A stretch of DNA of 64,000 nucleotides. It comes from Selaginella moellendorffii. Lineage: Eukaryota > Plantae > Lycopodiophyta. The stretch spans positions 459,989 through 523,988 of the forward strand of contig NW_003314354.1 in assembly GCF_000143415.4 (NCBI RefSeq). The letters run 5' to 3'. Positions 1 to 56,800 of the stretch are shown here, in pieces; the stretch's first letter is position 1; each line of letters starts with the position of its first letter. Made by a program: the position numbers and the translations under genes. The notes beneath the pieces are model-generated. The model was not told the origin of the DNA, ran no database searches, and worked only from the letters and a program-made list of their open reading frames with translations.

Positions 1-80
1 GTTTTAGCAGTGGGTGTGGCAATTATGCAGTGACAAATTCATTAACCAAGTCATAGTTTTTTATCTTGTCTTTGCTTGAT
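1..80 (-). repeat. Exact copy of Helitron Rep-domain segment 5479-5558 (fragment of a second Helitron copy running off the window start)
   Basis: Bases 1-80 match 5479-5558 base for base; both ORF-track peptides end SSKDKIKNYDLVNEFVTA. Confidence 0.92.
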
Positions 81-940
81 GGTGCTTTCCGCTGTGTTGT
101 TGATTTCTTCATTTCTCTTGCTCTGGACTGTTGTTTCAGAAGTAACAGGAGTATTTTTATCAATCGTGATAGTGGTTTCCACATTCCCAGATGGGTAATA
201 AGGACCAGGAGTGTAATATGGAGATTGTGGTAGTGAAATAAAATTAACATTCTCACATTCCTTTGCACTACAACTCTTACTCACAGATCTTGTATTTTCC
301 TTGCTTCCCATCTTCTCAAGAACCCTAAAAACTCTTTTGAATGAAGGAATAGTATCTACAGCTGTAAAAGTATTCAAAATATTAAGTAGTCAAATCAAAT
401 ATGATAGCTGTAACAGTTGCCATAATAAAATAATATAGTTTTATAAAAGATAGGTTCTCATGAACTTTGTCTTTTTTAAACAATTCAATCTTATAGAAAC
501 TTTTAACTTAGATATTTACGTATTTTAATATTTTAAAGTTTGCTAGAACCTTCATTTGTTCAATTTAGATCTCCTTTGTAATATTTTTTATTGACTATGT
601 TGACTTGAGTTGACTTGTGTTGAATTGAGCTCAACTCATGAGCTCAACTCAACTTTGGACCATCCCCCAAATGTAATTGTATTCTCCAAAACTTTATCAA
701 GCTTCCCATTGAGCTCCTTGCCTTCTCCAACTGTCAGCCCTTGAAGTAGCTTGCATCGTCTGTTACACAGCCACCTTCCTTGATCCTCTACACTATTCAG
801 AAACTTAAGAGCTAGATCTTCTTGCCCAGTCTCTACATTCAAAGTGTTCCAGGAGACAAGCGTGATCGGCTCAAGTTGTTGATCAGCAAATTGGGCTCAT
901 TTGTGTTTCTACAGTGTTAGTGGTGGTCAAGACACAATGG

Positions 941-1026
941 AAAGCATAGGAGGCTTTTTGAGTGCTCAACACAGCCTAGAAAAGGTGTGCCAATCCTCTG
1001 TCTAAGTTTTGTTGCTTGCTAGATTA
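941..1026 (-). repeat. Inverted-repeat copy A of an 86-bp segment (partner at 7461-7546)
   Basis: Reverse complement aligns to 7461-7546 without gaps, 73/86 identical by manual count. Confidence 0.85.
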
Positions 1027-1395
1027 GTGTTGATCAAATAGCAAACATAGGTAACCTTTGGCTTTCTTGAGCAAAGTGGAATAAGAATGTATTTTTAAAC
1101 CTGAATCTAAAATTAAGCACATTATTGAAACTTAAAGTTAAAACTAAGTCTAAGGCTATAAATGTATTCTCAAATTTTTGATTTTCTGTTTTTCTCCTCA
1201 TTAATTATTATATTGAATCCTACTCATTACACAAACCTAAATATGGAAATGTTAGCAATTTGATTAATAACCCCTTTTCCTTGGATGATATGAACTTAAA
1301 GCTAAACTTAAACATACAAACAAAGAATTATAAAGTAGATTATTTTGATCCTTTATTAATTAATCATTTTTATTTTAGATTAATTCTTTTTTTAC

Positions 1396-1806
1396 TTAAA
1401 GTTTTCTATGAAGACCACCTCCTCCAGATATATCTCCTCCAAGAAGTCCAGCACCACGAGCACCAGCACCCCCACCAGCACCACCACCAGCACCCCCACC
1501 AGCACCACCACCAGCACCACCACCAACGCCACCACCACCAACGCCACCAGTGCCACCACCAGCACCACCATCACCAACAGCACCAGTACCACCACCAGCA
1601 CCCCCACCACCACCACCACTCCCATCATCACCAGGACATAAATTTGTATCCATATCAGGATCATCTTTACAAATGCCATCAAAACAAGCAATATCCCCTT
1701 TACACTCATTATGACTTGAACAAGATTCACCACATGTTTTAAGTCTTGCTTCTACAGCTAGAATTAAACTTATAAATGCAAAGAATAAAACATAACTATA
1801 AGCCAT
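1396..1806 (-). CDS. Secreted Kissper-like (kiwellin N-terminal) six-cysteine peptide with a glycine-rich tail
   Basis: Intact 136-aa single-exon ORF; hydrophobic signal peptide ending VEA; C-x3-C-x5-C-x5-C-x4-C-x10-C with CKDDP, matching the Kissper spacing and CNDDP motif; GGGA-type repeat tail. Confidence 0.8.
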   Translation of the reverse strand: MAYSYVLFFAFISLILAVEARLKTCGESCSSHNECKGDIACFDGICKDDPDMDTNLCPGDDGSGGGGGGAGGGTGAVGDGGAGGGTGGVGGGGVGGGAGGGAGGGAGGGAGGGAGARGAGLLGGDISGGGGLHRKL

Positions 1807-3012
1807 ATTTAATCAAGAGAAAATTTCAGATTGTGTTATGAATCAAAACATCCTTCTTTTATACTACAACTAATTGTTAGTCCTCTTTACATTTCCTTAA
1901 TATTATGTTGACACTTGGCTTCAAATAGAACTTTGCATAGCTTCATGGCATGTGCCTTAAAATTGAAGTTTATAATTCTCTAATATATAAAATACAGCTG
2001 GATAAACACCAAATGGCTCATTATTATAATATAATATTAGAAATATAAAACCTTTAGTATTACATGGCATAATGTCATGCATGGTCTACCCAAAGATGGA
2101 TCACTTTACCCCTACCAGTCCATGGAGTGCACTCTCGAGTCTGATGGTCTCCAGCAATCCACAACAAGGGCAAGAAGCTATGGGAGATCAATGCGGACAA
2201 GCACGGCTACTGCCATAGTGTCTATTGGGTCCATGGTGATATGTACCATATGAGAACTCTCATTACCAGTTTCTTGGAAGGTGAGTGATAGAAAAATTTT
2301 CATGGCATTATTGACCAATGGAGATAGAATCTTCTTTAGACCAATGCCTAGATATTGTTTGTTACCCTTTATTTTATAACTTTTAAATACACCTGACCAC
2401 CAACAGCCAAATGTTTAGAAAAATACTTAAATTTATCTTGCTGCAGAGCTTTGCCTAATCCAATTGATAGATTTATGGCAGCAGCGAGGAAGGCACTGAT
2501 GAGCTAAGTGCCAAGCGAATAAGATTCTAGAAGATTTCTTCTAGGGTTTCATCGTCCGCCTTTGCTAGATGAGGAGCTGTGTCTTTTGCCCGATCGTTGC
2601 CCTGTTCCTAGATTCCATACAAGCATTGTCTTCAGGCAAGTTGCACTCTTCCATTTTGAACACAAAGAGCCCAAAGAATACTTCCAAGTCCATCTTTGGT
2701 GTAGGTGTTGCTACTTGCTCCACAGCCTGCTAGAGAGGTTCCTCCTAGGATGAGCCAAAAACCATTATACTGCAATGAGAGTTGCACTCAAGAAGCAATA
2801 GGATGAAAATTGTACCTTTGCCATTAGTAGCTCAATAGCACATTACCATAACCAAAATGACACACCACCCAATGCACACCACTCAGTGCCAATTTTCTTG
2901 TGGTGTGCACTTGAAACTCAAAATTGCAGGTCAAAGGTGGCTGAGTAGATAGGGATTTGGAATTATGTCATGTATTTGTTAGTCTACTTAAGAATTTCAG
3001 CCTAGACTGTAT

Positions 3013-6000
3013 TCATAGTATAAAAGTGTTGATCATATGGTATAAGATTGCCTTGAAGGGGGGTTGCAAGCATTTGAACACGAAGTTGTTTAGGTGATTT
3101 GCACCTTGAGAGAGCAATATAAAGTTGACAATATGTGAAAATAGGTTGGGGGAGAAGAAGGTCAAAAGTTTGGCTTTGGGCTTAGAAATAGTTAAGCAAT
3201 AACCTAGACAAATTGGGAATTGTCTTCGGGACATCTTAAAAGGGATTTTAACATCAGAAGATGTAAGGGTAATATGTGGAATAAAAACTTGCAATCCTAT
3301 GAATTGTCCTGTGATAATTTCATAATCTAAAATGTTTTGAGATGCTTGCTTGACCATTTCATAAACCAATTTGTGGAGATATGTTCCTAAGAAGAATCAA
3401 AATCACATTTTGTTTTAGAATTAATTTGTGTGGTGGGGTGATTGAATTTAAAAATTTAATTGGGAACTCTTCAGGGTGATCTAAGTCAACCGTGTCAATG
3501 CTCAAGTAACTATATGGAGCACTTGATAGTCTTCCAACAATGTCATTATTTATTTTGATCGTATCATCATTGAGTGGGGTGAGAATAATCTTTGATGTAG
3601 CTGTGTAAGTTTTTTATAATGTCATTTGTATTTGGGAAAATAAAGTTTACAATAGGTGTAGAGATAGATAGTGCATGTGGTATTTTGATAATATTTGGTG
3701 GGAGACATGGCAACTACAAACTACTATCACCAATTTGACAAGCCATTTAGAAAAACAAAGATTGCTTGAATGCATGTTTTTTATTAGTGTTAGTGTTGTA
3801 AAGAGTGACCATAGTTTATTCATTTTAACTAAGTTTGAAATAATAGAAGTTTGATAGCCATAGGGAACAACAAAAAGAGTTTGATGAAAGTCACCACTTG
3901 TAATCACTGTAACACCTCCAAATGGTTTAGAATTACATTTGAGATGCTTTAAACATTTATCAACTGTAAAGAAAGCATACATGTGGACCATATTAATTTC
4001 CTTCTATATAAGAATATTTGGTTGTTTAATGGTTTTTCTAGCAACACTATTAATTGTTAAAGTAGAGATAGAAGTCCCATTTAAAGGAATAAGAAGTTTA
4101 AAAGTTGTATGTGCTATTTGACTATATTTTAGTAAAAATACTTGCAATTCCAGTCCATGCCATACTTATTACTTTTTATTTTTTTAATTGTCATACTATA
4201 ATGATGTAGAAAAGTTTTCCCAGTACCATCAGGTCCATCAATAAAGAAACATTGATACTAGTTAGTGTCAATGGCATTCATAATAAACTCAAAAATATAA
4301 CATTTTTTATAACTAAATTTATTTATGTTTGTATTGATTTGGTCTTGTGATGGATCAAGGAGCATGTGTTCGATAATGGGAGTAAGAGTTGAAAGTGGTA
4401 AACCAAAATCACAATTAAATTTATTGTGTAGTTGGAATTTTGAGTTAATATTTAGTAAAGCAATATCAAAATAGTTTATATCATTTCTAACATAATCCTT
4501 AGACATATCAATTTTGAACTGATCCCATAATAGATTTGGATCTTTTAGTGAACAATACAAATAAATAAAAATAAATAACTATCTTAATTGGGATGGCATT
4601 TTAAAAGTAAAAGCTTTATATATGCAATGTTGCCATTTGCTAAAAGTCCCATTGCCATAACTGCTTGTTTAAAAGAAGATAAAATAACACCTTTGACAAT
4701 ACATATTTCCTCAAATGTTATAGCACCTTTTTTATGGAATAATATAAGCCATAAGTGGTATAACTCACTATTAGAAGGAGATATTAAATACATTCTTGGT
4801 ATGAGTTTAGCTTTTTATTGATGTAATTGCCATTTATGAAAGGATTTGTTATATATGTAGTGTAATGGAATTTGAGCATATATGTATTGCCTTGCATTAG
4901 TATCTTGTGTAAGCATTGTTCTATTTTGAGTGGCTCTTTCTAGTGCTTTTTATTCATGATCTGGTATGAAATAGATGTTTTAAAAATTAGGAAAATGAAT
5001 TACAAATTGTATAATAGTTAGTGATTTATCATGCATATGAAACTTAAATATATGCCACATAGCTTCAGAAGTAGAAATATATTGAGTATCAACAAAACTT
5101 GAGTTTTTGTCCCAATTTAAAGTTCCTCATTCTTCATATGCAATTAGGAATTTTAATGTTGCACAGTGATAACCTTTATATACATATTGAAATAAATATT
5201 TAATAGTTTTAATAGAAGTGCACATCTTTATATTGATATGTGCTTTATATTTCTTATAAAGGTATTTATTATAAAAAATAACCCATCTATTGTCAATAGT
5301 ATAATCATTTTTATAAAAGTCTATCTGTTATTAGGTTGGTCGTAATCAGAATAACCATCAACACAATAAATAGCTTCAATATTAAATTATTTTGGATAAT
5401 TTTTAGAGTATTTATTATTTATATGCTTCCCACATAGACCATATATCCTATGATTTATAATTATGTTATGCAATTTTGGTTTTAGCAGTGGGTGTGGCAA
5501 TTATGCAGTGACAAATTCATTAACCAAGTCATAGTTTTTTATCTTGTCTTTGCTTGATAACATTCCTAAGAAATGATAATGAGGCAAACCTCTTTTCTGG
5601 AATTCAATAACATAAATATATGCGATGCATTTCCCAAAAATTCCTTTGATACTTATATCATGTAGAAATTCTTTAAGTTTTAAGTTGAAAACTCTTGAAA
5701 TAAGATCAAGTCGATCCTCAAATAATTCATTCAACTCTAAGTTTTACAAAATTTCAGGCCACTTTAGGTTACATATAAATGTAATAAATAAATCAAATTT
5801 TCCAAAATGTATAACAATAACAATAGCATCTTGATAATATTATTGCATTGCTCATGAGCTACCAAGAAATGTAGAAGGTAAAATTATAACTTTTCCAAAT
5901 TTAACATTATTATTAGTAACTCTGTTATTAACATAGTCCATAAGACCTATGTAGTAATCCAAATTTAAGGTGTGAAAGAAATTAAAGTTGTTAAATTCAA

Positions 6001-7170
6001 CCTTTATATAAGCATCAATCATAAATTGTTGACTAAACTTCCCAGCATGTAGCAATTGATCATAAAGGAAAGAGTTGCCAATGCTATCTCATTGAGAAAA
6101 TTGATATATATAGTACTAAAGTACTGTTACATGTGACTCATTGTGGTAGGTTTTTTCATGCTAACATTTATCACCAAATGGTAAAAGTAAAGGATAAACC
6201 ATAGGATTATAATTTTCATTAAGAATAGAAAATTTTTTTGGCTATGAGTTAGATGGATGTATGTATATTCCTCTATCAAAAAATGCCTCACCCTCATCAA
6301 TAGCAAAAACAATAGTAACATCATTAGTCAGTGGCAAGTTATAACAATGTAGATTAATACCTTCACTTTTAACAATCATGTAAACACTATATTTCAGAGT
6401 TCCATTGCAAATTGAGAGACATTGTTCTTGTGATTCAAAATCATACATCATTTGAAAAGCTTGTGCGTATGGGTTTATTATTCTTAGCAAGTGATCTAAT
6501 TGTAATAGCAAATTAGGATCATAGTTTGTGTTGAATGGGTTTTGCTTTCTAATATTTGTAGCCTCAGATGCATCAAACATGTAAAGTTATCCATATGATG
6601 GTGGCACGTTTAGTAGCAGGATATGCTGAAACAATATTGTGATAAATTTGACCCTGTATTGTAAAGTAATATGGGACTTTACCACTTAAATTATCAACAT
6701 TAACACCCATTGATGCAAAAACCAAATGTTGATTTTATATGTTAATTTTAAAGTTTGAGTTTTTATTTTCATTAAAAAGCATACACAATATATGGGGAAG
6801 GGAAACCTTTCCATTCTTGCAGCATATTGATCTTGACTCATTTTCAAAATGTAATGCACCACAAAAGACATATATAAATGACATATTTCCAATATTAAAC
6901 ACATGTATTATATGGTCATTATAATTCTTTTGATGTGCTAATTTATAGACAATATAACTATGACAATTACATGCATTTATATTAGTTTCATTAGCATTTT
7001 AAAGGTCTATATTTGTATGATCTTCATCAGCATGTGCTATGTTTGTATTAGCATCGTCAAAATCTAAAGTAATTTTTGCATTAGCATGTTCAAAGTCTAG
7101 ATTAGTTTCTTCATTAACACATGCAAGGTTGTTGTGAGTGTGAATATATGTGCTAGTGTCAATAGTTGGA
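3013..7170 (-). mobile_element. Decayed Helitron RepHel gene (zinc knuckle, HUH Rep, PIF1 helicase) with many stops and frameshifts
   Basis: FCGALHFENE..CCKNGKVSLP at ~6800-6870; QQFMIDAYIKVE and VIILPSTFLGS; VIEFQKRGLPHYH (Rep motif 2); FFIDGPDGTGKTF Walker A at ~4215-4250; PFGGVTVITSGDFHQTL; RRQFPICLGYCLTISK. Element termini not identified. Confidence 0.92.
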
Positions 7171-7460
7171 GGCAACTAGTGAGGTATACTTCTTAATACT
7201 TGCGAAGCTAAGGTATATTTGCTAGGGAGGAAGTTTTAAATTAAATGAAATAACCTATCTAGTGCAAATTTAAACTTAAGGCAAGAAGTAAATGTGAGTG
7301 ATACATCAATCTAAAAGAAAATCAAAGCACTTATCTTAAAATTTTTAGAGATTGCCAAAACTTGCATTCTTCCACTAGAAAAAAATATATATAAAAAAAA
7401 TTGAAGACTATATAGTGAGAGCATAATCTGTACATGCCTTAAGCTATAAACAAAAGAGAT

Positions 7461-7546
7461 TAATCTAGTAACCAACAAAACCTAGACATAGGACTAGCAC
7501 ACCTTTTCCAAGGTGTGGTGAGAATTCAAAAAGCCTCCCATGCTTT
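7461..7546 (+). repeat. Inverted-repeat copy B of the 86-bp segment (partner at 941-1026)
   Basis: Ungapped manual alignment with 13 mismatches. Confidence 0.85.
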
Positions 7547-8550
7547 TTAGAATACAATGATGCTTGAGCCGTGAGAGGTGGGTGGGGTTTGCAAGTTCAA
7601 GAACTCACCTTAGGCTTGTTCTTTCTCGTGGAAGGATAGAGACTACAAACTCTCTAATAGTTCTTCATAAACCCAAATGAAGATGTCTCAAATTTCCACA
7701 GCACATAAAAATCTAGATTGTTGTGGTTGGGGGCAAAATTAGTGGCTGCCAACCTGACGCTAAACATGGATCTCCATAGGAAGAAGTGTAATTGCTGCAA
7801 TTGCTAGTGATCTAGCAAGCAAGTATTAGCTCAATTGCGGCAGAGCACCTAGGGTGAGCTAAAACGAATGGGCACAAGGGCAGGACACATAGGTGACACA
7901 TGTCAGATGCCTATGTTGCCTTGTTTGAAGCCAATGAGCACTAAAGTTGTGATGGCCTCCTATTGGCCAGGGCTAACATTAGGAAAATTATTCGTGCAAC
8001 CATGCAAACAAAGCTTGGCCTGGGTCTGGGATCCAATGGCTGGCAGGCCTCCTTGCTAGAGGGAATTGTTCATATTAGAGACCCACAGGCATATGCCAGC
8101 ATGCTTCTTGTCCAAATTTATAGACTTTCCTAAACACTTCCTAGTATATTCTAATTTATTTACCATCTAATGATTGATAGACAATAAGATAAATCTTGTG
8201 TTTATAAATTATAAACATACATTTGATCAATTGTTGAATAACACAACTATTAAATAAACCAAGCATTATTGTATGCTGTTCACATAGCAAATAATTTGAT
8301 TATCAATATCAGTTTTCATGTAGCTCTCACAAAAAAAAATGGTTTGAATAAAATGAAATTAGGCACATATACATATTTCAACATAATTCTTTTATATATA
8401 GCTATAAATCTGGAATTGAATATAGTTATCAATATATATAACATTTATGCAACTAAAATCAACCTGGTTTTTATTATACATAACATATACTTAAGAAAAT
8501 TATATTAGAAAATTATATATAAAAATTATAGTTCTTTGAAGTTTTATTCT

Positions 8551-8820
8551 GAAAGTGTAATATAATATAATTTTCAATATAGACAATGTTGTGGTGTATG
8601 TAATATGAAACTAGAAGACAATATTGTTTTTAGTGTAGATGTTATATCATTCTCTCAACTACTATAATAAAACTAGAACAAAATATAGTTTTTAGTATAG
8701 ATAATATTCTGTTGTATTATATTATACAAACTTGGAACATAATATAGTTTATAATATAGACAATATCAACAAATATTTTCAAACTGGAAAACAAAATTTA
8801 TGAAAACAAAATTTATTATA
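8551..8820. repeat. Degenerate AT-rich minisatellite, period ~55-62 nt, 4-5 units
   Basis: Recurring core close to AAACTAGAACAAAATATAGTTTTTAGTATAGA at ~8551, 8607, 8669, 8727 and 8780. Confidence 0.6.
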
Positions 8821-11800
8821 TGAATAACTTGCAATTTATAATACCTTGAACAATAGGCTAGTATGGTATTTTTTCTTAAGCTTATGATGTTTTATATGTA
8901 GGGCTGTTGGCCAGCCATGGACTGGGAGGAAAGTTGGTACTAGATATGACAAATATTTTTAGTGCCAAAAGTGGTGTGTAATGAAAAAAAGTAAATTGAA
9001 ATTACCCAAGAGAAACTCTAGTAGTGGATCACTATACTAATTGCATGTTTTAGCTCTAGGGATTGTTCAGTTTGATCACACTTGCATCCTACCAATGAAT
9101 ATTATACTCTAAAAAGGTTTATATTGTGCCACACTTAGAACCACTTCCATTTGATTTTGGATATGGTTTCTCTAAGAGGTGTCTTCAACAATGATAGTCC
9201 AATAGAAGTGGCAATAGGTGATATAGTCAAAATCCATGGAAGAACTAAATATATGATGAAGGTACAAGCCAAGTGGATGGAGTCTATAACCAATAATCTC
9301 AATATATACAGTATTAGAAGAGGATATTTGATAAAGAAGTAAATGTTTTATCTTGTATATCTTCCTAGGCAGAGCAAAAGAAAAAAGTTAAATGAAATGG
9401 AGTTACACTTAAGTTTAAGCATTCAAAGAAGAAATACTTAATATATGCAAGAAGTAGTTAGGAATAGTTATAAAATCAATAACACTTAAATGTATTGGAA
9501 AACAATTCTCACTCATTGTTGTATGCATTTGCATTGAATTAACCATATTTTTTCCCGCTTATATCTATAGAATTGAGAAAGTGACATATACTTATCCTTA
9601 CTCATGCTTTTAGAGTTTGGGGCTCAATACTTCTATAATCTATTTTCTCATTCTTTTTTCTTCTCTCCTTCTATGTTTTTGTCTTTGTCTATTTGACACT
9701 ATTTTGCAAGTAAGGGGAGAACAAGTACAGGCAGAAAAAGCCTTACTCAACATCCTATACTAAATAGTAGTAATATAAATTTATTTATCTTACTAAAAGC
9801 GTATGGGAATTTCTTTAGACAAGTTCTAGCTAGAGACATCATTAGTTTGCAAAATGGTGCAATGTCAAAAGAATATTGTCAAGGAGAAAATACACCATTC
9901 ATCCTTTATATGTAGTAGGTTTTGGAAAGAAGACAACACACTTCCAAATAAAAAGAGGACTTACATCTTACTAGAAGGTAGCAATAATGTGGTAATGGTA
10001 GAAGAATGTTTTTTACTTCTACTTGACACTTCTTCATCCTTGGATTTTTCTTTTACTAGTTTGTTGTTATTCTTGCAACAAGACAAACATCATGATGGAG
10101 GGATTAGCAAAGTAAAACTTTTAATACTAGTAGCATGTTTAAGTTCTTGTTGCTCTTTAGACCATAGCAAAAATTGACTCCTATCTAGACAAGTACAATA
10201 CAAGGAAAAGAAGTGAGAACTTAAAAGGCTTCTTTATTTCTCTATTTACTCACTTAAGTAGACAACTTGGAAGAATACTCATCTTTGTCCTAGATTACAC
10301 ACAGCCATCTAAGCCTTATAGATGAAGCTAATTTATTTCCTTGGATGGCCTCCAATCACTTCAATGCTTGTCTTAATTGTGGACTCTTGTCCTTGGTCTT
10401 GTAATAAGTTGCAATGCTAAGCGCAAAGAAAATCAATGCATTCCCAAACTATTGCAAGTTTATTGATGCTAGAGACCAAGAATATCAATAAGGGACCAAG
10501 AAATATCAAGACTGCTTATTGTCCCTAATATGTACTACAATTTTAGAAACCTTAGCCCCCACAATAGTATTCTAGAATGGAGGAGAAATCCCTAGTGCCA
10601 TGGTTTTTAAGCATTAGAATATTCATAGAATCTCCTTGCCTGAATTAAAATATTCATCCATTAGCTCAATCAGCTGATCAATATGCAGTCAGGATACATC
10701 CAAAATTGGCTTGGTACCCAAAATGAAGAGTTGGGCGATACATTGGGTCAAATTTATCAATTCTAAATGTGGTTGATAATAGTGCATAACAAGAATTAAC
10801 AACTATCACTAAAGTAGTATAGCATCAAATTATCATTTCTTCATTTAAAATGAACAAATATCGATAAAAGTTTGACATAGTAACCTTGAAATAAATATTG
10901 CAACTACTACTTGAATTAAAGCCTTCTTTTGCCAACATAAAGTGATACTTTAGAAGTGAGAAATACATCTACCAATTGCCAAATTCATAAAAAATTGAAA
11001 TTGTGAAGGCCTTAAGTACATTGCTAAATAGGCTGTGAAGTTTGGATAGATAATCATTTTTAAAGAGGTTTGGTCCAAAAATACTTGGGACTACCACAAT
11101 AATATTTACTAGAAAAATATACTAAAACTATATCTATTTTCAAAATATATTGTGAATCATTCTTTATTTATAACAATATATGTAAATTGTACTAAAACTT
11201 AAGTGCATAGAAAGACCAAAACATTATTCCAAACTTACTCTCTCCATTAGTTAATTTTAAACTTTATCTATATCGGTGAATTATATAGAAAACTATAGAA
11301 ACCACACTAAAAACCACTCCTAGACTGATTGTCAAATAGCATATAAATCATATTAAAAACCAGCAAAAGATTTGTTATAGTCCCAGGCTAGAGTATGACT
11401 GAATTAAAAAAACATTCCCAAAACCAGTCGTATATATAGATTTTTCTAGTTTATTTTTAAAATATTTTCTGTAATGTAGCATAAAATTTTATATACTTTA
11501 TTATGAATTGAGAAAATTTAAAAGAAATATTTATCTTAATAAAATGACTCAAAAGCATGAACTTATAATATTATCAGAGAATTTGATAAATTATAACTTA
11601 TGAGCTATAATTATGAAATATATTAGTAATATTATGTAGCTAAAAATAAGGTTAAAAATAAAAAGAAAAATTTATGAAAATTTACAATAAATATATAATT
11701 TTAGGAATGTGTGATTTAGAAAATCAAAATTACACGAGCCTAGAGTCGGAGCGTGCAAGGCCTTAAATGCGAGAAATGATTGTGGAATTCCTTGAATCCG

Positions 11801-12156
11801 CAAGAGATCTTACGCTGGATTCGGTTATGATTCTAGCTAGCGACAATCACTGACTGACTATGACCACTCTCAAAGCGAGGAAGGAAGAACGATGCCCATC
11901 GAATTGAATGTGCGACTTGCTATATAGGAGTCCGTATGGAGTCCGCACCGCAGGATTTTCTTCTTGCTTGCTTGCTTGGTCGGTCTCTCTTTCTCCATCG
12001 CTCGTGTGCCGTGCGTGCGTGCGCCTTACCTACGAGATCTTCTATCTAATCCCACGGGCACCCACTTTAAAATCGCGAATCCACTATATATCTGCTTGGT
12101 ACTCCCCTCCTTCGATCGATCGACCGATCGATCATTCGTTCGATTGCGAAATCATC

Positions 12157-51735: not shown

Positions 51736-52893
51736 ATGGAGGCGGTCGTGGCGGATCTTCACAACCAGCTCGGGAAGAAGAGCAGCTTCGAGAGCGCGGC
51801 CACGGCGCTGGCATCTCTCTTCCGCGATCGCTATGACGGGGCCACGGCGGCGGAGAAGAGAGCGGTGAGTGAGCGATCTGATTCCTGTGAGAGGATTGAT
51901 TTGAGCCAGGGAGAGTGTGTAGATGTACGCAGCTGCTTGCCGAGCGGGCTCGCTCCTTCAGAGCCGCTACACTGGAAAAGGATTCTGGATTGCTGGGCAG
52001 ATACTGTTTGAGGAAGCTGGAGATGCCATCACAGACCCGCAAGAGCAGGAGAACATGATGAACTGGCTCACTAAGGCTCGCGAGTTTCTCCACGAGGACG
52101 AAGACAATTCACAGCCACAGCAGCAAGCGCGAGCAGGACCAAGTGCGTACGCAAATTTTTCTTTTAGTCTTTGTCTCACACCGCCTCGTGAACAGGCTCA
52201 CCATTTTTGTTCGAGGGACAATTGACTGTCGATCCGGAGCCACGACCTCCGCTATGGCTTCTCGCTCCGACTACGTATCATTACGGACCGGCACAGCTTG
52301 ATGGTGAAGGCGAACATGACGATGAAGAGCTGGAGGATTATGTGCAGTCACTCACAGCGCTGGAGAACTTTGTGATTGAACAGGCAGTTCGGCTAAGCCA
52401 GGTAACGGGTTAGATGCCACCAAACTTCACAGCGACTCGAGTTATCTCTTCTTCTGTGCCTTGCAGGAGCAGGATACTCAGAAAGGACCACCTCCAGCTT
52501 CCAAGGACGAAGTCGCGAAGCTTTCCATCGTACGCGTGACCGAGGAAGTGCTGAAGGGCCTGGGCGATGGAACCGAGTGTGCAGTTTGCAGAGAAGTTTT
52601 GGTGGTCGGCGATGAGATGCAAGAGATGCCTTGCAAGCACTACTTCCATCCTCTCTGTCTCAAGCCATGGCTGGTACGTGTGCTTTTTTTTTTTTTTCTG
52701 GATTCGTGTCTTGGCTGAGAAACGTTATATGACGTTCGCCCAGGAGGAACACAACTCGTGCCCGGTTTGCAGGTACGAGATGCGCACCGACGACCACGAG
52801 TACGAGAGCAGAAAGGAGCGCGAAGCGGAAGCCGAAGCCGAGAGGAAAGGTGCGGCCAATGCACTTCCGGGTCTCGACTTCATGTACGTATAA
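51736..52893 (+). CDS. AIP2: RING-H2 E3 ubiquitin ligase, AIP2-like, multi-exon
   Basis: QLGKKSSFE..LQSRYTGKGFWIAG..LFEEA; LFEGQLTVDPEP; PPASKDEVAKL; CAVC..MPCKHYFHPLCLKPWL|EEHNSCPVCRYEMRTDDHEYE; ends FMYV. Confidence 0.92.
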
Positions 52894-52966
52894 GTAGATT
52901 AGAAGCGATTGTGGAACAACTTTTGTTCCCCTAGGGCAGTACGTACTAATAAAACAGGATAGATCT

Positions 52967-53632
52967 TCAGCGCCATCTCGATCCAACCAGGCTAAAATCC
53001 TGGCTATCTTCGTAGAGAATGCTTCTGATGGTCATGGCGAATGCTGCTGCCGCAGAAACGCCGCCGGTGTTTGTCACGGTTTGGACGTATGGTGGAGCAG
53101 GCCCGATTGCAGCCTAAGAAAGACAAAAAGAACAAGCTTGATCGAGTTTCCGAAGTACCTCAACAGCTTGTAGTTTCCTGAGGTACCACTCTCGCTCGAA
53201 CAAAACACCAAGGTAAGATTTATCCAGCTCGTTTTCTGCCTCACCTGTAAGCAAGAAACGTCTCTGGTTCTCAAGAACTAGCCGAGGCGAGGTCTTACGG
53301 ATCATAGAGTGGACTTCCAGTAGTCGCCGGAGATGCATGATGGGTTTCTTTAAGAGAGCCTTGCTCTCGACACTGATAACCTCGAGTGTGTGTTACTTTG
53401 CCAAGATCTAATAGCAAGAAACATATTTTTGAGAGACCTGCTGGACTGGGAGTCTATGTCTTGAAAAATCTCTCGCAAGTTCTCCCACACGTCAGTGCTG
53501 GTGCTCTCCGAGTTTTGCGTTCCATCGTTGTCCAGAGGAAGAGCCCCGCCTGGAGAGAAAACATGAGAAAAAGATGGCAACACTTATCTCCATACCAGCG
53601 TCAGAAGCTGCATTGTGGAGCTCTTCTTCCAT
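52967..53632 (-). CDS. 151-aa protein with an EB1 C-terminal (EBH)-like domain and no CH domain; exons 53632-53596, 53549-53438, 53372-53299, 53244-53159, 53113-52967
   Basis: Manually spliced model with four GT-AG introns gives 456 nt in one open frame; the C-terminal part LFEREWYLRKLQAVE...TIRSILYEDSQDF resembles EB1 LEKERDFYFGKLRNIE...IVDILYATDEGF. Confidence 0.7.
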
Positions 53633-53821
53633 GGAAGCAAGAAAGAAAACAAAGAAAACTAAAGACCTAGATTCCAAAATATACCCGTAGTTCAAATTAT
53701 TTACAAGCAAGCTATGTACAATATGTACGCGAAAAAAGAGAGCAATCACTTGACACTTACACCGTTGGTCATCTCACTCTCACTCCTCGTTCACTACTCT
53801 CGCTTCTACCATTCTACAAAA

Positions 53822-56800
53822 CTAATAAGCCAGTGACGTGAAGAGACCAACACCCCTGTTTATCCAGTGTGATTGATCTTCCTTGGAAGGCAGCTCTATA
53901 TACATGACAAAGTTTGTCGAGTGACCAGTAGTCGATAGTGTTCCTGAAAAACGAGAGAGATTCTTGTGAACTTAAATGTTTGAACTCCCAAGGAGGGAGT
54001 GATCTGCGTACCTGCGCGAACCAGTGTCTTGTAAACCGGGCACTCGTAGATGCCTTCCGTGGGAGCCTTCCTAAACTGGAGAGGCTTGAGCCACACCACC
54101 GGGAGCTCCGTGTACAACTCCTTGGGCCTGGATTCGTCCAGGACGTGCTGCTCGTAGTTCCACCGGCATCCCTCGAGGTATAGGCCCCGGATGTAGCAGC
54201 CATCGTCCGGGGGCTGCTTGATGGTGTCGTAAGTTCTGTCGTCAATGATCACGAAGTCGAAGCCCACGGTATCGATGGGGTATCTGTACTTTCTCGCAAA
54301 GTTTTGCAGTGTTCCCGTCAGGAAGGCCTGGGCGTGTTTGAGAGATGAGTTTAGCTTGCTGCTCGGAGACGTAAAGAAAAACAGGAGAAGCAAACCTGAG
54401 GGAAGAAAAATCCTGAAATCCAAAACACGGGAGGAGCACCGTTCCTTATCCATGTACTGATGAAATTTGTTCGCTCCAATAGATCAGCCACCCAAGCCGA
54501 AAGAGGTTTCAACGAAGGATAAGCCTTACCAGCCCACATTTCAGGCACCTGCAAATATGCTCCAAAGGTTTAACAATCTATACTACGAAACGGAAGAACG
54601 AATGACCAGAAAGTTTACCTGGTTATTGAAGATGCTAGAGCACACCATCTCAAGTTCCATGGACATGACCACGAGACCTTTGAGAGCCTTGAGAGCGTCA
54701 TTCAGCGATATCTTCATGACCGAGAGAAGACCATTGTACCGAATGCACTCCTGCGTCAGCACGGTGTTCATACTCTCGCTATACATGGTGGGATACAACT
54801 GCAGGACCGCCTCCACGTCAAACACCGAAGGCAACTTCTCCAGAATGTCACGGCACGACTTCTCGATCATCTCTTCCCGGGACAAGCCCCCTCCTCCGGA
54901 GCTCTGCTCCCTTGGTTGCAGCATGAGCACGGTGTTGAAGAGGTCGTACGACTCGTTCTGGTCGCAAGTGATGTCCGCGTTCTCGTGAAGTCCAAAGATT
55001 TCTGGCTTTGGTGCAAGTGGTAGCTCTTTGATGTAAGCCAGGAACTGATTCACGTTGGAGGCTTCTGGAACTCGAAACACACCCGATGGACTGAAGAAGT
55101 ATTGAGATGTTTCTACCACCTGAGAGAAAAAGTGGAAATAGTGAGCGTAGAACCAAGGGAAAAACACCATGTGTCGTACATTGGGATTGATAAAAATCAA
55201 AAGAAGATTGTTGATGAGCCTCCTGTCTTTGTCGTCTGTAACTCGTCCTCCATAGTTGATTTCTCCACACAAGAATCGAATGACCTGCAAGCAATGCGGG
55301 TAGTTAGATTCGGATCTTTGCTCGCAGCAGTACAAACCTTGTATGGGATTTCCTGATAGTCGTTCAAAAACATTCTGATCTGAGTTTGGCATACACTCAA
55401 ATCTCCGTCAGTAAACTCGTACCGGATGTTCCAGCCAAGTGGTCCGAACTTGCGTCTCTCTTGAATGACAGCATGGAACAAGCAGCTTGCAAAAATAAGC
55501 TTCTTCCACTCGTCTGGTTTTGCGCAGTCGCTCAAGATCTTGTCGGTGAAACGCAAGTAGGACCTCGCAAGATTGGATTTCAATCCCTTGGGTGGTTCCA
55601 GCGTCATCTTTACACCATTTTGAAGGATAGAAACAGGAAAGTCTGGACTGGGCATGCTTGTCAGCCACAGCCGGAAATCCTTGTGAACCTACAAAGGAAT
55701 TCTTCCTTGTAATTCACAAAAAAAAAAAGAACTCCACTCTGTACCTTCTCTGGATCAATATTGTCCACAATACGCTCCAAAGCTGGCATCCATGACTGGG
55801 ACAAGTGGCAATTCTGTAAGCACACCCACATTCCTCGTTCCATACCAAGCTCTAGCAACTTTTCTGCCTTGGGACCTTGTCCTTGGCCCAAAGACACCTG
55901 GTGATAGTCAAACGGTTAAGAACAAGTTCTAACGAGCTCGTGTACGTACCTTTTCGAACTTCTTGGTAAACCTCAGTTCATCAGCAAGCTTCAGTAGATC
56001 TGCCATAGGATCTGCACCTGCTGAGAGAACGAATATAAGCGGTGATGAGTTGGATCCATCCTTATAACATGCACCCAGATCAAATGCTGGCGGCTCTATG
56101 AATCGCTGTCCCATTGTTGCAGCAACGAAGTCTTGAACACCGAGAAGAGCCTTGTCTACCCGAAGGCATCGAAGTATCAGCAACTTTTGGAGCATGCTGA
56201 GCTTTGTGTCCCATTCACCAGCCAGGGGCTCTCGATGAGCTTCCGGGCTGTCAAAATACTTTCTGTAGTGTCCTATGTTCTCGGCCACGTGTTTATCAAG
56301 GCCCTGGTAGTTTGGAAGCTTGCTAAGGTTGGCAATTTCAATCCAGGACTGAAAGGTAGGCCACCGTAACGTTCAGTAGGGTGAGAAAAAAACAGGAAGA
56401 ACCAGATGTACCTTGTCAGTAAGCCATGAAGGTGCTGGATTTGGACTGAGTGCACTTGAACTGGCAGCACCAGCCAGTAGAAACCGCCACTCGGTGGGAT
56501 CAACTTCTTTCCGTCCCTGTAGATATATGTCAGAAAGAGTTCGACAAGAACATAAATTCCATGCCTGCATAATCTTGATGCAAAGAAGGAACGAAAACAT
56601 GAGCTTGTGCTTCTCGAAGAGCGACCGACAGATATTCACGTACAAGGAATACGTGAAGTATTCGTTTAAATTCTCAATTCGCTTGTCAATGATAGAAGCT
56701 TGCGCAGCACTTTCAATAGCTCGACCAAATAAGTTGATGAACCAAGCAAGACTGTACTGATACATGGGATCCACAATGGCCAAGTCCGAAATACAGAAAA

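Follow-up and report, generated by a model that had tools for sequence, protein, structure and literature searches.

EB1 is the hub of microtubule plus-end networks. Its calponin-homology (CH) domain binds growing microtubule ends, and its acidic EEY/F tail recruits CAP-Gly proteins. To our knowledge, the tail domain of EB1 (EBH) is known almost only together with the CH head. MicroProteins are small single-domain proteins that titrate larger relatives. C-terminal fragments of EB1, when over-expressed in mammalian cells, form heterodimers with full-length EBs and remove these from the tips of microtubules; between EB1 and EB2, heterodimers hardly form (PMC2686402). A literature search for natural CH-less relatives of EB1 found none, and a search for the locus tags of the proteins described below found no mention in the searchable papers.

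Here we analyze a gene in a stretch of 64,000 nucleotides of the Selaginella moellendorffii genome (contig NW_003314354.1, positions 459,989 to 523,988), hereafter the window, to which all coordinates of this species refer. The gene, LOC112341900, is a genuine, transcribed and evolutionarily conserved gene of Selaginella moellendorffii, unnamed so far. Judging from sequence comparisons, the CH-less EBH proteins to which its product belongs are a distinct and previously undescribed family, whose members are annotated as 'uncharacterized' or 'hypothetical'.

Gene model and isoforms

Joining the five exons on the minus strand of the window (53632..52967) gives a computed frame of 456 nt and a product of 151 amino acids (Table 1). 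This spliced product is identical to the NCBI entry 'uncharacterized protein LOC112341900 isoform X2' (P0001) of Selaginella moellendorffii. The five-exon GT-AG model put forward in the preliminary description of this DNA was thus right, the use of intron 4 in the sampled tissues apart, and agrees letter for letter with RefSeq isoform X2. The mechanical ORF list does cut the 151-aa frame into pieces, as had been noted, and the gene had been called hidden on that occasion. It is not hidden from annotation, since RefSeq already lists three isoforms of it, unnamed. Isoform X1 (169 aa, P0005) retains intron 3 and gains 18 aa, isoform X3 (128 aa) skips exon 4 with a shift of frame, and the acceptor of intron 4 is used by the RefSeq models X2 and X3. 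The alternative forms of LOC112341900 are extensive for so small a gene.

Table 1. Position of the exons and introns of LOC112341900 and of the adjoining exons of its neighbours in the window
Feature	Position	Strand	Remarks
Last exon and stop codon of an axonemal inner-arm-type dynein heavy chain gene	53822..53941	-	Upstream; Pfam Dynein_C, 275-308 of 309
Exon 1	53596..53632	-	ATG at 53632; residues 1-12 and first base of codon 13; as in RefSeq isoform X2
Intron 1	53550..53595	-	46 nt, GT-AG; weak RNA support (loose end of an X7 contig)
Exon 2	53438..53549	-	Block 1, DVWENLxxIFxDID, residues 32-45 (53493-53452)
Intron 2	53373..53437	-	65 nt, GT-AG; joint 53372>53438 in X5 and X7 contigs; position common to Diphasiastrum
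Exon 3	53299..53372	-	Block 2, LLKKPIMHLRRLLxxH, residues 56-71 (53356-53309)
Intron 3	53245..53298	-	54 nt, GT-AG, in frame and stop-free; joint in X5 and X7 contigs
Exon 4	53159..53244	-	First, long EBH helix, including LGVLFEREWYLRKLQAVE, residues 86-103 (53212-53159)
Intron 4	53114..53158	-	45 nt, GT-AG; in-frame stop at 53116-53114
Exon 5 and stop codon	52967..53113	-	Loop, then second EBH helix and tail, F128-F143 (53041-52994: ...IRSILYEDSQDF)
Last coding exon of a RING-H2 finger gene	52743..52893	+	Convergent; ends at 52893; called AIP2 in the preliminary description

Transcripts and splicing

RNA contigs from four runs, belonging to four studies, were compared with positions 52300-54700. 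These contigs have the character of RNA, since both the RING gene (GT..AG introns) and the dynein gene (CT..AC introns) are spliced in them. Introns 2 and 3 are spliced in contigs of X5 and X7, two of the four runs, and the joints have CT..AC ends; therefore the transcript comes from the minus strand. One contig of X7 stops at 53550 and carries eight further letters, an exact match to positions 53597-53604 of exon 1, which weakly indicates that intron 1 is spliced. Exon 1 and the 5' end were assembled in none of the four runs, and no contig of these runs covers 53596-53676. Intron 3 is unspliced in contigs of X1 and X6, and wholly unspliced stretches extend over 52743-53550 (X1, joined to spliced exons of the RING gene) and 52750-53470 (X6).

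Splicing of intron 4 was seen in none of the contigs of the four runs that cover 53114-53158, and record 12 of X7 still contains this intron with introns 1-3 removed. As to the RNA junctions anticipated in the preliminary description, two were thus found in two runs, that of intron 1 is suggested by the loose end, and that of intron 4 was not recovered. The contigs keep only the dominant path, and the antisense transcript of the RING gene (see below) overlaps the locus, so that the unspliced contigs do not prove that intron 4 is never used. When it is retained, the computed protein ends 14 residues past exon 4 and has 117 aa, without the second EBH helix; this product may be frequent in the tissues sampled.

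The use of intron 4 in Selaginella is the weakest point of the gene model. We infer it from the conservation of exon 5, the position of the intron in Diphasiastrum, orthologue mRNAs that lack the intron and the RefSeq models. The residues I135, L136, Y137, E138, D139, D142, L145, G147, S148 and W150 of exon 5 are invariant among the orthologues. In the Diphasiastrum gene, introns occupy the same positions as introns 2, 3 and 4 of Selaginella, and a Logan contig of 944 nt contains a Sphagnum-type ORF of 163 aa that is uninterrupted.

Neighboring genes

The neighbors and the distances were as first described, with a space of about 930 nt holding the gene and about 190 nt from its ATG to the stop codon of the dynein gene. 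The latter lies at 53824-53822, 189 nt above the ATG, and Pfam confirms the dynein end. The closest PDB relatives of this dynein are of the inner-arm DHC2 / DNAH1 type. On the other side, the exon preceding the last one of the RING gene matches zf-RING_2 at E 6.7e-8. The stop codons of the RING gene and of LOC112341900 are only 73 nt apart, so that the 3' ends of both genes must overlap, and the two are possibly a natural antisense pair. The RING transcript appears to run about 650 nt beyond its own stop, antisense through the whole of LOC112341900 (X1 contig 52743-53550). Spliced 3'-UTR contigs of the dynein gene reach 53685 and 53704, about 50-70 nt short of the ATG of LOC112341900. The promoter and the 5' end of the gene may be situated within the 3' UTR of the dynein gene; alternatively, read-through may extend into the gene. 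Elsewhere in the window, positions 1-12000 have a G+C content of 26-37% (41-58% in the remainder) and are likely rich in repeats or transposons.

The preliminary description had taken the adjacency to an axonemal dynein as a hint of a role in sperm or axoneme. In Diphasiastrum complanatum (CM055103.1, 16.283-16.349 Mb) there are two copies of the gene (L001 and L002), about 44 kb apart and inverted, which encode an identical protein of 141 aa. Within 10 kb of each copy, one side is free of called genes and the other has only a retroelement fragment. Since the synteny is absent at both copies, the adjacency is not conserved and carries no weight. One of the Diphasiastrum copies lies near a Ty3-type integrase fragment.

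Similarity of the C-terminal region to the EBH domain

The preliminary description had recognized the EBH pattern of EB1 in the C-terminal half of the protein, and profile searches bear this out. The residues of exon 4 align to ERDFYFxKLRxIE of Mal3, Bim1 and EB1, and those of exon 5 to ILYAT.EGF of EB1, the C-terminal end being LVGSRWR. A profile of the C-terminal domain, built from 21 members of the family and searched against PDB, matched Mal3 (E 2.2e-8), Bim1 (E 5.1e-8) and, more weakly, EB1 and EB3 of human (about 5e-4 to 1e-3). EB tails or EB1 chimeras account for 29 of the 31 PDB matches, and the alignments extend over the two EBH helices, correctly ordered and spaced. The same profile matched the C-terminal coiled coil of a Tetrahymena centriole protein of the A-C linker (PDB 9qzc chain q, 380 aa, 'centrosomal protein, putative') at E 3.7e-4, where NVKLLAENSSYLEKLRKTEE is aligned with NVGLLVEASSFLHKLRGLED of prasinophyte members. 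This protein is probably the short CEP135 homologue; the match covers the coiled coil only, without the ILY helix, and is probably coiled-coil noise.

In Pfam, P0001 alone reached 13.6 bits (E 0.086) on the EB1 family PF03271, below the gathering score of 27, so that the profile check suggested at the outset fails for the single protein; it succeeds for the family, PF03271 being matched by 14 of its 24 members, with a best E of 2.3e-7. The Andalucia protein scores 28.4 bits, above the gathering score, and Chlorokybus matches at E 3.3e-5. No other Pfam family was matched by more than one of the 24 members. Searched exon by exon, the gene gives almost nothing in Pfam, with a trace of EB1 at E 0.16 on an open piece of 74 aa, because the domain is split by intron 4. 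As a lead only, the nearest clusters in a language-model comparison were EB1-like C-terminal domains (0.88).

The AF2 model has helices at 24-46, 51-106 and 124-137, with a mean pLDDT of 80 for the whole protein and 78 for its C-terminal part; the long helix 51-106 is at pLDDT of about 90. The hairpin of the monomer superposes on EB1 (1txq_B) with Z 5.1 and 2.5 A over 56 residues, a Z value that is ordinary for helical hairpins. Foldseek searches with the whole model and with its C-terminal part ranked EB tails at the top, at non-significant values (E >= 1.3). VIA-align (48,161 chains) and a shape search of the ESM Atlas were dominated by generic helical hairpins and were uninformative. Because the structure searches are not significant, the homology to EBH rests on sequence profiles, with which the structure is consistent. 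These profiles support the C-terminal 70 residues or so as a divergent EBH domain, in which a loop connects a long helix to a short return helix.

Features of EB1 kept and lost

The SxIP-binding pocket of human EB1 is formed by F216, Y217, F218, K220, L221, R222, E225, Q229, L246, Y247 and A248 (PMC5686072). Equivalent residues were counted in 21 members of the family, from the HMM alignment and the EB1-SxIP contacts of the same paper. The equivalents of E213, K220, L221, E225 and L246 are invariant or nearly so (K220 in 20 of 21), and Y217 (15 of 21), Y247 (16 of 21) and F253 (18 of 21) are mostly kept. In Selaginella, the pocket residues Y217, K220, L221, E225, L246 and Y247 are identical to those of EB1, F216>W and F218>L are conservative changes, and R222>Q, Q229>G and A248>E are also found. 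Across the family, too, W stands for F216, L for F218, E for A248 and G for Q229, and the R222 equivalent is Q in land plants and R in 12 of the 21 members. Given the changes at F218, A248, Q229 and R222, SxIP binding may be lost or retargeted.

Neither a CH domain nor any other N-terminal Pfam domain was detected in P0001, P0003, P0004, the ten longest relatives or any of the 24 members, which include the longer proteins of Ginkgo, Pyramimonas and Andalucia. The lack of a CH domain, which had first been argued from the short distance to the dynein stop codon, thus extends to all relatives analyzed, and orthologues bearing a CH domain, which would have made this gene a truncated relic, do not occur among the family members. 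The acidic EEY/F tail is also absent, the Selaginella protein ending in ...DFSLVGSRWR. Without CH domain and EEY/F tail, this is not an EB1/MAPRE protein, and it belongs to a distinct EBH-bearing family.

A family of CH-less EBH proteins

Orthologues of 141-176 aa were found in Diphasiastrum, Sphagnum, Ceratopteris (KP509_38G018100) and Adiantum, together with two transcript-derived proteins; they share 47-66% identity and 38 invariant columns. An exhaustive HMMER profile search of 1.84 billion representatives detected 43 proteins at E<=1e-3. The named matches are from Ginkgo biloba, Klebsormidium nitens, Mesostigma viride, Chlorokybus atmophyticus, Chara braunii, C. vulgaris, Pterosperma, Pyramimonas, Rhodelphis marinus and the jakobid Andalucia godoyi; the rest are unnamed transcriptome or metagenome proteins. 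Angiosperms, animals and fungi are absent from the named matches, although they dominate the databases, and Chlamydomonas-type green algae are not among these matches either. In the same search no canonical EB1 was found at E<=1e-3. A word-index search with the alignment of 24 sequences added no named taxa among the matches listed.

The alignment contains three ordered blocks, DVWENLxxIFxDID, LxxPLxxLRRLLxxH and the EBH with ILYE..(D/E)F.L, and all three are present in P0001. Block 1, an amphipathic N-terminal helix, is invariant across six land-plant members, and the C-terminal consensus of the family is F.L.GS.W. The preliminary description had missed the two N-terminal blocks and regarded the protein as a bare EBH microprotein; their conservation argues for a distinct family instead. 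The maximum-likelihood tree is weakly resolved, with ferns, lycophytes, land plants plus Chara, and prasinophytes grouped as for vertical descent, and it roughly follows the species tree.

Proteins of about 100-157 aa with blocks 1 and 2 and the coiled coil, without the ILY return helix, are abundant in marine metagenome and Logan clusters (P0027, P0029, P0037-P0039, P0041 and P0048). One such cluster member is filed under a 'bacterium' MAG (MDB9924856.1) and is probably misbinned eukaryotic (picoalgal?) DNA.

Possible function and alternative explanations

Taken together, LOC112341900 is probably best explained as a conserved gene of the CH-less EBH family, encoding what we infer to be a dimeric, motif-docking adaptor for the microtubules of motile cells. 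By analogy with the EB1 tail, the long helix would dimerise into a parallel coiled coil capped by a four-helix bundle. Because the EB1 pocket is largely preserved, the hydrophobic pocket of this bundle is probably the docking site for a short linear motif in a partner. Without a microtubule-binding CH head, the protein should not be able to track microtubule ends by itself. Its role would rather be that of an adaptor, either soluble or anchored separately, and the conserved N-terminal helix, packed against the long helix in the AF2 model, would offer a second interface.

Two alternatives concern the nature of the protein. The ER.[FW]Y..KL..IE and ILY motifs could have arisen by convergence in an unrelated helical protein, a coiled coil that only resembles EBH. 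That P0001 alone is below the Pfam threshold, that the fold searches are not significant and dominated by generic helical hairpins, and that the same profile matches the Tetrahymena coiled coil at E 3.7e-4 would agree with this. However, both EBH helices are matched in the right order and spacing, the columns invariant in the family coincide with key residues of EB1, 29 of the 31 PDB matches are EB tails with a best E of 2e-8, and bridging members pass or approach the curated cut-off of Pfam; we therefore regard convergence as quite improbable. A decayed EB1 gene that has lost its CH exons, either a pseudogene or a relic, would also lack the CH domain, and the tight spacing of 189 nt to the dynein stop would agree with it. 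Yet the same architecture is conserved in short orthologues without a CH domain, from streptophyte algae through Ginkgo and further, the frame is intact, the transcripts are spliced and the intron positions are conserved. With no CH domain here or in any relative, the protein is not a truncated relic, and the orthologue set practically rules this explanation out.

The other two concern the product and its action. The reading preferred in the preliminary description was a dominant-negative microProtein, which would exchange subunits with EB1 to form one-headed heterodimers, or soak up SxIP partners, and so damp plus-end networks in certain cells. EB1 C-terminal fragments act in this way in mammalian cells (PMC2686402), and the Selaginella domain is EBH-like and lacks a CH domain. 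But the family is old and strongly diverged, with E values against EB1 of only about 1e-3 to 1e-8 and no canonical EB1s at E<=1e-3 in the exhaustive search; the coiled-coil surface differs, even EB1 and EB2 barely heterodimerise, and the two additional N-terminal blocks, being conserved, suggest that the protein has a function of its own. Because of this divergence and of the extra blocks, interference is rather unlikely as the main role. The role of an adaptor seems more probable than interference alone, a natural antagonist competing or heterodimerising with EB1 being the less likely form of action. It is also unlikely, if slightly more so, that the main Selaginella product is an mRNA retaining intron 4, translated into 117 aa or an NMD target, with the full EBH form minor or restricted to some tissues. 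In its favor are the unspliced contigs over 53114-53158, that of X7 record 12 included, and the other alternative isoforms, X1 and X3, listed by RefSeq. Against it, the contigs hold the dominant path only, unspliced words are supplied by the antisense RING transcript (X1 and X5 contigs join both genes), and exon 5 is under strong purifying selection.

For the adaptor, a role in motile cells is suggested by the taxon distribution. The named members, some 13 taxa among many unnamed matches, are all from flagellate lineages (streptophyte algae, moss, lycophytes, ferns, Ginkgo, prasinophytes, Rhodelphis and a jakobid), with Ginkgo as the only seed plant and none from angiosperms. The phylogenetic profile proposed earlier, flagellated against non-flagellated plants, thus agrees with the idea of a motile-cell role, which had been drawn from the dynein neighbor; the new ground for it is circumstantial, and the old one has fallen away. 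The family would serve the microtubule apparatus of motile cells, in land plants that of spermatogenesis. Motile cells of streptophytes share a multilayered microtubular root (PMC6492006). A more speculative and rather doubtful reading is that of an ancient, pre-Archaeplastida family in which EBH docking works without EB1. Its N-terminal helix would be anchored at basal-body-associated microtubule roots, namely the MLS and spline of streptophyte sperm and zoospores and the comparable roots of prasinophytes and jakobids; the protein would recruit SxIP-like ligands there. Most seed plants would have lost it along with sperm motility, and Ginkgo would have kept it. If true, this would be the first molecular handle on the organization of the spline / MLS microtubule array.

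A natural family with the tail but not the head, and with an N-terminal module of its own, would mean that EBH, as a docking platform, has been put to use again apart from tip tracking. Among the named taxa the family is confined to organisms with flagellate cells, being kept in Ginkgo and missing from angiosperms; this makes it a candidate component or regulator of the plant sperm microtubule apparatus, which is poorly understood. Proteins annotated only as 'uncharacterized' or 'hypothetical' in several genomes gain a name, and the family is directly testable in tractable species such as Ceratopteris, which has a clear orthologue, and Sphagnum, with a moss member.

Comparison with known systems

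The closest described proteins are those of the EB1/MAPRE family (human EB1-3, Mal3 of S. pombe, Bim1 of S. cerevisiae and EB1a-c of plants), which have the same two-helix layout of ER.[FW]Y..KL..IE, a loop and ILY....F. The Selaginella family differs from them in lacking the CH domain, the linker and the EEY/F tail, and in having two conserved N-terminal blocks that are absent from EB1. Between its helices, the loop exceeds that of human EB1 by about 12 residues. Its named members are from flagellate lineages only, while EB1 is nearly universal.

The engineered fragments EB1-C and EB1-C-deltaAc (PMC2686402) are similar in being headless and consisting of the dimerisation region and EBH module, and the latter also lacks the acidic tail. 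However, these are artificial truncations of EB1, with an identical coiled coil, whereas the Selaginella protein belongs to a natural, paralogue-like family that appears to have diverged anciently. Plant microProteins of the LITTLE ZIPPER type resemble it in their small size (151 aa in Selaginella) and in having kept, from a larger family, no more than the domain for protein-protein interaction. Usually microProteins have arisen recently from their targets, while the CH-less EBH family is older than the land plants and contains additional conserved sequence. This extra sequence and the age of the family suggest that its members play an independent role.
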